Shown: piece by piece, positions 41,401 to 44,400 of the stretch
Layout: each line of letters starts with the position of its first letter
How positions within the stretch are numbered: the stretch's first letter is position 1
Source: Utricularia gibba
Taxonomy: Eukaryota; Plantae; Magnoliophyta
Length of the DNA stretch: 64,000 nt
Assembly (NCBI GenBank): GCA_002189035.1
Contig: NEEC01000011.1
Coordinates: forward strand, 2,604,001 to 2,668,000
Direction of reading: 5' to 3'
Translations under genes and position numbers: made by a program
The notes under the pieces: generated by a model
Database searches by the model: none
What the model was told of the DNA's origin: nothing
The model's input: only the letters and a program-made list of their open reading frames with translations

Positions 41401-44400
41401 AGAAGATGTATTACCAACTAGAGGAATGAAGAGGTATGCCTTTGAGGTATCCCAGGGTGTGTTGGATGGTTCGACATCCACATCTAACACAATGCTCATT
41501 AGTCTTACATGAAAGCTCTTGAGCAGTGCCAACTGTAGATTAACAGATCAATGGTTGTTACAAGTATAGATTTCAGCTTTGGAACACATCTTAAATCACC
41601 AAAAAAAAGACAAGGCAACAAACCTGACTTTCTCGAATATCTACAACTCCATGAAAGACCAGACTTGCCTTTGTTATCACAGAACGGGCAATAAATAAAT
41701 CCACTGACAAGGTTAATACCTAAAACAGATCAAATGACATATAAAGAATCCATCTTGAACCATTCATAAATTCAAAAATGCAAAAATGAAGTACCTCTGC
41801 ATCCAACTCACTGCCAAACACTACGGCAAATTCTGATACTTGAGTAGAAAGAGGATCTTTTGAAAAACCAAAATTTTCACATTTAATGTGATACATGTAA
41901 AGATGAAATAACTGTGCGTTATCACAGCCTCCCCCTGATAATATCCAATCACCCTATGGACACAAGATATAGAGATGATTATCATTCAAAGAGAAAGCAG
42001 GTTCATAGGAATAACTTAAAAGATGCGGAGCAACTAGGTGGCAACACCTTGATGAAATCTGGATGTCCTTTTGTAAATAGTAACTTGAAAAAATTAATTA
42101 ACATTTAGTGGAATTCTCAAACTCCACAAACTAGTATGGCAGAAAAAATAACCTGCAGAATATCAGCTACTCCTTCAGGGTAAAATTCTCTATGCCTAGC
42201 AGTACCAGGAAGAGGATCTCCATCATCATTTTGTTCATCCTTGTCCGCTTGCCCACCAAAACCCTTGTCAGGCAGAAGCATGTCAGTGAAGGCCCCCATT
42301 TCATGCAGCTTTTTGCAAGCAGCCAAACAAACAGCCTACATGTAGAAATATCCATCAAAAAGCAATTACAATGCTCACATGAAAAAGAACCCAAGACTGT
42401 GATAAGTGAGAAATGCCTGCTGTGCGAGACGCATGGATTTGCACAAAGGCCCCTCCAATTTCTCAAATGGCGCATTACAAGGCAGCTGAAGCTTGCATGA
42501 ATACTCTGTGGGGCATCCGGGTGTCTCATGGCGCTCCATAGTAAACTCAGGATGAAGAATTGAGTATCTAGGGAAAGGTAATTGTGCATGTGAGTTGGAA
42601 TTTGAACAACGACTCATGCACCGAAAGATGCAACAAGTTCACTCAGAAATAGTGAATACGAAGTCCACAGACACGAAGAGAGACCTGTCACTGGGAAGCT
42701 GGGAGCAATAAAAGTGTATAAGTCCAACAGCAGAATTTAGGCTCACGACAGCACCGGTTGATTCAACCTGGTATATAGTATCAGATACTGCCTCCGCGGT
42801 ATTCATGCCATTGAGAGACTTTAAATGGCTTATATCTGTCCTCTCTATGGCTTCTTTACGCAAGGTCTCCTCACTGTTCCTCGCGTTCTTTAAGAAGGCC
42901 ATATGTGAAAAGTTTCCTCTAAAAACAAAGATTGATCACTTTTACACACATACGTTTACTTCAATAGTGAAAAATACAGAAACTGAAAATCTTTTTCTCA
43001 TGGCTACCTCTCAACCATCAATATGTAATCCGATCCAGGCTTTCTAGCACGACCTCTAGATTGAATATAAGCCAGAACTGTCTTGGCAAGGTCAAAGCGA
43101 ATGACAACATTGCACTGTCGAATATCAAGCCCCTCTTCAGCAACACTTGTGGCAACTAAAACTGTCACCTGGAGAAAAGACGCAAATGAATTGAGAGGGT
43201 AGACAAAATTTAGATCAGAAATGAGTGCACATAGAAGAACATACACGTCCATCTCGAAACCGAGATATTGTGTCTTGCATTTGACTAGTTCGCATTTCCT
43301 GACTGTTATTGTGGCCAATCAAAGTTGCTGACTTCACAAAACTTAATGATGGTAGCTCCAAAAAAACCTGGGAGCACAATGTGCATTTGCTTTTTGGTCA
43401 GAACACATCAAACTACAAACCTCTAAGACGTGCATCTTAAACACTACTGACCTTAGGAAGAACCAATGCTGTCACAACACGCTCAACAAAAATTATAGCC
43501 CGAAAATCTTCTGTGTGTTGATACTTGAGAAGAATTTTAATCAATGACTGCACCTTTGGAGTTACTTTCCCATCGGCGACAGCAGCTCCAATAATCACAT
43601 CCACGTGCTCTCCACCAGATACAACTAATAAAAGCATATCCATAAGAGATTGTTCATCATATGAAATTTGCATCATACATTTCAACTCTCACCATGACTT
43701 TCAGAAAGCTCCCCCTCTTCCAGATCATCAGCTTCCTTTTTAACAGCCACATCACCATCCGTATCTATGCCAGTAGAATCATTAACTGGTATGGCTCCTT
43801 CACACAAATGACACTGCAAAAGTGTAACAACTTTTTGCAGATATGATTCTTGGAACTTGATATCTAGTTGATAATTTGCCCTTTCATCATTCTGTAAAGA
43901 GGTTAAAAATCCTTGTGCAACCTGCATCCGGAATCACAATAAAAGGTTCTCACTTAGCAAACTAAACCATATATGAGTTCATAATCAGCATAACATCGAA
44001 AAAAAAGGAAAAAAAGGTCTGTGACCCAACAACATACACCTTCACGATGTGTCCAAAAATCAAAATACCTTAAAGGCACACCATTGCCCCAGCTCTCCAA
44101 GTGCATAGTTAACTGCCCTCAGTTTTTGGATTAAATTAGCGGCACCATCACTTTCAGTACGTTCAGATACACCATAAACTTGGCGGAGCTCTTCCTTTGC
44201 ACCAGCATCTCTTGCTCCCATGCATTGCCATTTGCTTCTTCTAGAACTTAGTCGAGCCGCCTCCTCAACTGCTTGCTCCATTTGTTTTATTTGCTCATGA
44301 AGAGACCATAAAGTAGCAGCTTTATCATACTCAACAACCACTTCTGAAGGCATTGGTACATGTTTCTCTAGCTCTGAACGGTCTTTTATTGTACATACCA

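Follow-up and report, generated by a model that had tools for sequence, protein, structure and literature searches.

The window, i.e., the whole stretch of 64 kb of Utricularia gibba DNA that was analysed, carries on its minus strand a DCL1 orthologue, whose full-length coding region of about 20 exons (38479..46208) was delimited by Pfam, tblastn and alignment with the Arabidopsis protein (AtDCL1). DEAD/ResIII helicase, PAZ, two RNase III and dsRBD domains are recognized by Pfam on the ORF pieces lying between 38.4 and 46.2 kb. Furthermore, 1917 of the 1919 residues of the Erythranthe guttata DCL1 (P0256) align by tblastn without break from 46208 down to 38479.

Two exons of this gene flank the former target site of miR162 and match residues 967-1020 and 1021-1052 of AtDCL1 (PDB 7eld). 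The upstream exon (41795-41952, minus strand) ends with ...GAGTTGGATGCAGAG at 41795, corresponding to the codons GAG TTG GAT GCA GAG, and the downstream exon (41624-41719, minus strand) starts with GTATTAACCTTGTCAGTG at 41719, corresponding to the codons GTA TTA ACC TTG TCA GTG. They are separated by a GT..AG intron of 75 nt (41720..41794, minus strand), whose first bases are gtactt and whose last bases are ttttag. Splicing was checked on assembled contigs of public runs placed on 40800-43400, which are informative on joints and silent on RNA ends or cleavage. The exact joint is present in contigs of X1 and X5, which come from two studies of the best-matching organism, and of X7, which comes from a relative about 92% alike. 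It omits 75 nt, bordered by CT..AC on the plus strand, which correspond to 41720-41794 once the cut is set 3 places further right. These transcript joints establish the intron that the original prediction had placed within the site. The X1 contig is continuous through the joint and identical to the window in both flanking exon pieces (0 differences), and seven more DCL1 introns are borne out by the contigs of X1, X5 and X7. The DCL1 of the window is an intact, expressed gene of a Lentibulariaceae plant. A second copy with an intact site, which the original prediction had proposed to look for, is not on record, U. gibba having one DCL1 among its four DCLs (PMC8333044).

The neighbour gene, which lies outside the feature under study, is a single-exon QUIRKY (47044..50166, minus strand) encoding multiple C2 domains and a PRT_C domain according to Pfam. 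Its best 20 or so named matches all belong to Lamiales and share 72-77% identity with it (Sesamum with 76%, then Handroanthus, Perilla, Erythranthe, Genlisea aurea with 74%, Striga and Olea). In the same way, a maximum-likelihood tree of the 211 residues encoded by the PAZ-domain exon (40899..41532, minus strand), which was also used for the homologue searches, places the window as sister to Genlisea aurea (96/87) within a Lamiales clade (100/94). This placement rules out a plant outside the miR162 clade, such as a moss or a lycophyte, that would carry an ancestral non-site.

As for gene order, QUIRKY and DCL1 (the latter starting at 46208) are arranged head-to-tail on the minus strand, with less than 1 kb between them. 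In Sesamum (L008), a Band_7 gene is found downstream of QUIRKY instead, which indicates that the adjacency of QUIRKY and DCL1 is not a constant feature of Lamiales. Two small orphan genes arranged in tandem (34480-37242) lie immediately downstream of DCL1.

Sequence and pairing of the former miR162 site

In the majority of angiosperms, miR162 recognizes 22 nt lying over a DCL1 exon junction, guides slicing by AGO1 and thereby keeps DCL1 at a set level. The corresponding stretch of the window lies at the homologous location in the DCL1 mRNA, i.e., at the junction between the Dicer-dimerisation and PAZ regions. A chance match is not at issue, as it is the homology of a conserved exon junction in orthologous genes that defines the site. 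Its 5' half, TTGGATGCAGAG (41795..41806, minus strand), forms the end of the exon 41795-41952, encodes L-D-A-E and faces miR162 positions 10-21; its 3' half, GTATTAACCT (41710..41719, minus strand), forms the start of the exon 41624-41719. The intron falls between the bases of the site that face miRNA positions 9 and 10. The spliced site found in real transcripts (X1 contig), UUGGAUGCAGAG/GUAUUAACCU (the slash marks the exon junction here and below), agrees with the genomic sequence and with the reading initially proposed.

The sequence of miR162, TCGATAAACCTCTGCATCCAG, and that of its site in AT1G01040, CUGGAUGCAGAGGUAUUAUCGA, which has an expectation of 2.0, are published (PMC4354979) and are printed there exactly as the original prediction had given them. 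Compared to this canonical site, that of the window shows four base changes, at bases 1, 19, 21 and 22, and no indels. In the 3' half, the canonical GTATTATCGA has become ...AACCT in its seed-match part, so that V-L-S-M has become V-L-T-L. Two of the substitutions change an amino acid, namely Ser to Thr and Met to Leu. Residues 1016-1026 of AtDCL1 (PDB 7eld) read ELDAE/VLSMSM and those of the window ELDAE/VLTLSV, and the non-synonymous change from VLSMSM to VLTLSV that had been put forward is thus real.

In the canonical register, miR162 positions 1, 2 and 4 are mismatched and the usual bulge lies between positions 7 and 8, as had been announced; a G:U pair at position 21, which the original prediction did not mention, comes in addition. 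Except for this G:U, the 5' half of the site pairs throughout, and 13 contiguous pairs are left, at miR162 positions 8-20. With an Allen-type penalty, in which a mismatch costs 1 and a G:U pair 0.5 (both doubled at positions 2-13) and a bulge costs 2, the site of the window scores 7.5 versus 2.0 for the canonical Arabidopsis site, and it falls short of a near-perfect complementarity to miR162 (penalty of about 4 or less, especially at positions 2-13). RNAduplex gives -25.5 kcal/mol for the window versus -33.7 kcal/mol for the canonical site, with the 5' end of the miRNA unpaired and its 3' two-thirds paired. As slicing in plants requires that miRNA positions 2-13 be paired, canonical miR162 should not slice the site of the window.

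The negative feedback between DCL1 and miR162 is known from Arabidopsis (Xie et al. 2003, cited in PMC4429486). The Arabidopsis gene is orthologous to that of the window and shares with it a junction-spanning site, the placement of the intron and a 5' half that is identical save for its first base. Unlike that of Arabidopsis, the 3' half of the window site leaves the three positions listed above unpaired.

The site in other Lamiales and the residues that it encodes

Relatives were gathered by exon-by-exon searches, then by a region search with a full-length Buddleja DCL1 taken from a cluster. An intron of 72-94 nt is found in the identical position at all of the 12 other loci. The comparison with related taxa, which the original prediction had called for, reveals that the site is kept in a Vitis-like outgroup (CTGGATGCAGAG/GTGTTATCGA, penalty 2.0) and in Forsythia ovata (CTGGATGCAGAG/GTATTGTCGA, penalty 3.0), a member of the Oleaceae that is the earliest branch sampled, and that it is degraded at all ten core-Lamiales loci fetched besides the window, each in a different way. 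For example, the penalty ranges from 3.5 to 7.5 at the four Lamiaceae-like loci, with TTGGATCCAGAG/GTATTATCGA at the Perilla-like locus L001 (3.5), TTGGATTCGGAG/GTTTTATCAA at L003 (6.5), TTGGATTCAGAG/GTATTGTCAA at L006 (6.5) and TTGGATTCAGAG/GTCCTATCAA at L007 (7.5). It reaches 5.5 at a Buddleja-like locus (CTGGATGTGGAG/GTATTATCTA), 6.5 in Salvia miltiorrhiza (TTAGATTCAGAG/GTATTATCAA) and in Orobanche gracilis (TTGGATGCAGAG/GTAATATCAA), and 7.5 in Erythranthe guttata (TTGGATGCAGAG/GTACTGTCAA). The site of the window (TTGGATGCAGAG/GTATTAACCT, 7.5) is among the most eroded of those sampled, and only that of Genlisea aurea (CTGGATTCCGAG/GTGTTAGAAT) has a higher penalty (12.0).

One change recurs. 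The G facing miRNA position 2 is gone in nearly all core Lamiales through a synonymous change, at a CpG, from TCG to TCA (L003, L006, L007, L010, L011 and L012) or to TCT (L004/L005), TCG being found at L001, L002 and L013. This recurrent change is the expected first decay step once selection on the site stops.

The sites of Genlisea aurea and of the window differ at three of their last four bases and at two bases of the 5' half. Both share the replacement of Met by Leu (ATG to TTG), which suggests that this change probably predates the split between Genlisea and Utricularia. The codon of the preceding Ser differs between them (GAA in Genlisea and ACC in the window).

In Orobanche gracilis (L011), the two parts of the site (7973-7984 and 8060-8069) show mismatches at miR162 positions 2 and 7. 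As miR162 is reported to be expressed in its congener O. aegyptiaca (PMC9516757), the miRNA may persist in Orobanche without an efficient site in DCL1. Its reported presence in O. aegyptiaca also speaks against a single loss of miR162 common to all Lamiales.

The erosion of the site is accompanied by changes of the protein at ELDAE/VLSM. The motif LDAEVLS(M/I/T) is kept in 91 of the 92 modelled non-Lamiales DCL1 cluster representatives and in 5 of the 18 modelled Lamiales ones (three Sesamum, Erythranthe and Forsythia), these representatives not being phylogenetically independent. The Ala of ELDAE, whose GCA codon lies inside the site, gives way to Ser, Pro, Thr, Val or Met across Lamiales families, and because the replacements vary between families, they point to repeated events. 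Judging from these sequences, it seems to be the miRNA site, and not protein function, that constrains this Ala. DCL1 would clearly illustrate how a miRNA site can constrain a protein, its Ala, Ser and Met codons being near-invariant outside Lamiales and free inside.

It should be added that the deposited DCL1 models P0247 (Buddleja), P0264 (Henckelia) and P0270 (Primulina) lack the final residues of the exon that precedes the junction or have others in their place (e.g., ...SEFAVLSMSM or ...LPYTCQVLSMSM). These oddities are probably annotation errors at the short intron. For Gesneriaceae, a real alternative exon is another possible account of deviating DCL1 models.

Search for miR162 in Utricularia and comparison with known systems

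A loss of the site has been described in another species of Lamiales. In Salvia miltiorrhiza, the site was lost through four mutations (authors' penalty 5.0), no cleavage product directed by miR162 was obtained by 5'RACE, and miR162 could be found neither in 114 million small RNA reads nor in the genome (Shao, Qiu and Lu 2015, PMC4429486). The four changes were recovered here from the fetched locus. The same work reports that the sites of Rehmannia, Sesamum and Olea are weakened, and miR162 was not found in the small RNAs of Rehmannia or Olea (PMC4429486). SmDCL1 (Sci Rep 5:9891) resembles the DCL1 of the window in that it belongs to a plant of the same order, its site occupies the same position over the exon junction, and this site has been altered by point substitutions and not by a deletion. 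However, the changes affect target bases 1, 3, 7 and 21 in Salvia (all but one in the 5' half) and mainly the seed-match end in the window. They replace A by S and E by K in Salvia, instead of S by T and M by L. Moreover, SmDCL1 was submitted to RACE and small-RNA tests (PMC4429486), whereas the loss in U. gibba is predicted from sequence. The Salvia paper did not frame the pattern as a Lamiales-wide trait, and Lentibulariaceae lay outside its sampling. The window shows two features of the Lamiales group of DCL1 genes with an eroded site, namely membership of Lamiales and a point-substituted site in an intact, expressed DCL1.

As in Salvia, where the miRNA is undetected, the published list of miRNA loci of U. 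gibba does not include miR162. This list, obtained with ShortStack, holds 71 loci belonging to 17 families (PMC8333044). Its Table S2 contains miR168 at three loci and nothing miR162-like, but the list is strict and also lacks other conserved families of low abundance, so that absence from it is weak evidence. The core string of miR162, CUCUGCAUCC, is likewise absent from the 71 loci and from the accessible part of the supplements of PMC8333044. In the 64-kb window, an Rfam scan at gathering thresholds detected no MIRNA locus, and pattern scans allowing up to 3 mismatches, for miR162 and for the spliced site in reverse complement, gave no match. A search of the DCL1 gene for inverted repeats that could form a MIR838-like intronic hairpin gave only weak or AT-rich pairs. 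A literature search retrieved no paper mentioning Utricularia together with miR162.

The DCL1 genes of Physcomitrella and Selaginella are devoid of a miR162 site, with penalties of 9.0 and 7.0 (PMC4429486). They are thus like that of the window in lacking a usable match to miR162, with a comparable penalty. However, the absence is ancestral in these plants, whereas the window points to a secondary loss, as the outgroups and the early-branching Forsythia keep the site. Furthermore, the DCL1 of Physcomitrella is targeted by miR1047 and not by miR162 (cited in PMC4429486), whereas no replacement miRNA is known for the lineage of the window.

Probable loss of miR162 control and alternative accounts

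The most likely account of these data, to which a probability of roughly 70% can be given, is that the DCL1 of U. gibba has secondarily lost its control by miR162 through relaxed constraint. Point substitutions would have rewritten the half of the site that faces the 5' end of the miRNA; canonical miR162, left with positions 8-20 only, should not direct slicing, and DCL1 would stand outside the miR162 feedback in U. gibba. This erosion could be a late stage of the release from constraint that all sampled core-Lamiales loci display, a relaxation that may have gone furthest in the fast-evolving Lentibulariaceae. The replacement of Met by Leu would have come first, before the split between Genlisea and Utricularia, and the Ser codon would then have diverged differently in each genus. 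From this, we infer that slicing does not take place and that miR162 is either missing from U. gibba or without relevance there. The claim of the original prediction that this lineage has weakened or lost the feedback finds support in the penalty of the site, but the restriction to this lineage does not stand, since the core-Lamiales loci are all degraded.

The feedback could nevertheless persist if a co-evolved miR162 variant, with compensatory changes at its 5' end (AGGUUAAUACC...), or a new and unrelated miRNA targeted the junction or another part of DCL1. A joint drift is conceivable as miR162 has DCL1 as its only conserved target, and the 12-nt 5' half of the site is still perfectly kept in the window, its first base apart; in addition, Shao et al. 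raise co-evolution and cite the case of miR1047 in Physcomitrella (PMC4429486). However, this kept half encodes the conserved L-D-A-E. Furthermore, a co-evolved miR162 would hold a new site constant, yet the Ser codons of Genlisea and of the window differ, and the differences between the two sites, including in the seed-match part, imply that no new site is conserved within the family. The miR162 core is found in none of the 71 published U. gibba loci, and neither a miR162-like sequence, nor a match to the spliced site, nor a hairpin of the MIR838 kind came out of the searches of the window. The co-evolved variant, which the original prediction had offered as its alternative, is therefore disfavoured, and a persistent feedback of either origin seems unlikely. 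A re-wiring in which a small RNA specific to Lentibulariaceae, either a diverged descendant of MIR162 or a new miRNA, would pair with the rewritten junction or with another part of DCL1 can be imagined by analogy and appears slightly less probable still.

It is just as doubtful as a persistent feedback that canonical miR162 is still made and weakly represses DCL1, by inefficient slicing or translational repression. The 13 contiguous pairs and the duplex energy of the window site would be compatible with such a residual action, and the co-occurrence in the genus Orobanche of miR162 (reported in O. aegyptiaca, PMC9516757) and of a site mismatched at positions 2 and 7 (O. gracilis) indicates that mispaired sites and the miRNA can coexist in Lamiales. 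However, because of the mismatches at positions 2 and 4 and of the bulge between 7 and 8, no more than four of the first seven positions can pair in the window. Even the milder site of Salvia (6.5 here, 5.0 according to its authors) yielded no miR162-directed 5'RACE product (PMC4429486), and miR162 is not in the miRNA list of U. gibba (PMC8333044). By far the least credible account is that the changed bases result from an assembly error or from a rare allele of the sequenced individual. Nothing was found in its favour, X5 having a single difference somewhere in 41624-41716. The X1 contig is identical to the window through the joint and X5 originates from another study; the congener about 92% alike shows only 2 differences in 41655-41716, and a Leu codon at the Met position is also found in Genlisea.

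A secondary loss of miR162 control thus remains the preferred reading. A loss of the same kind is already published for Salvia (PMC4429486), and the window adds Lentibulariaceae to the Lamiales exceptions; as far as the literature search shows, this is its first description for this family. Taken together, the degraded sites suggest that much of Lamiales has let the miR162 site drift and that the release of DCL1 could be a shared trait of core Lamiales. The feedback between DCL1 and miR162 is commonly described as a conserved trait of flowering plants. If much of the order has drifted, Lamiales would offer a natural system for studying the importance of this feedback and the means by which it is replaced. 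The erosion of the site also exposes which residues of DCL1 the miRNA site had held. In U. gibba itself, DCL3 is truncated (published UgDCL3 of about 996 residues) and the small-RNA profile is miRNA-heavy (PMC8333044); speculatively, an unregulated DCL1 may be relevant in this context.
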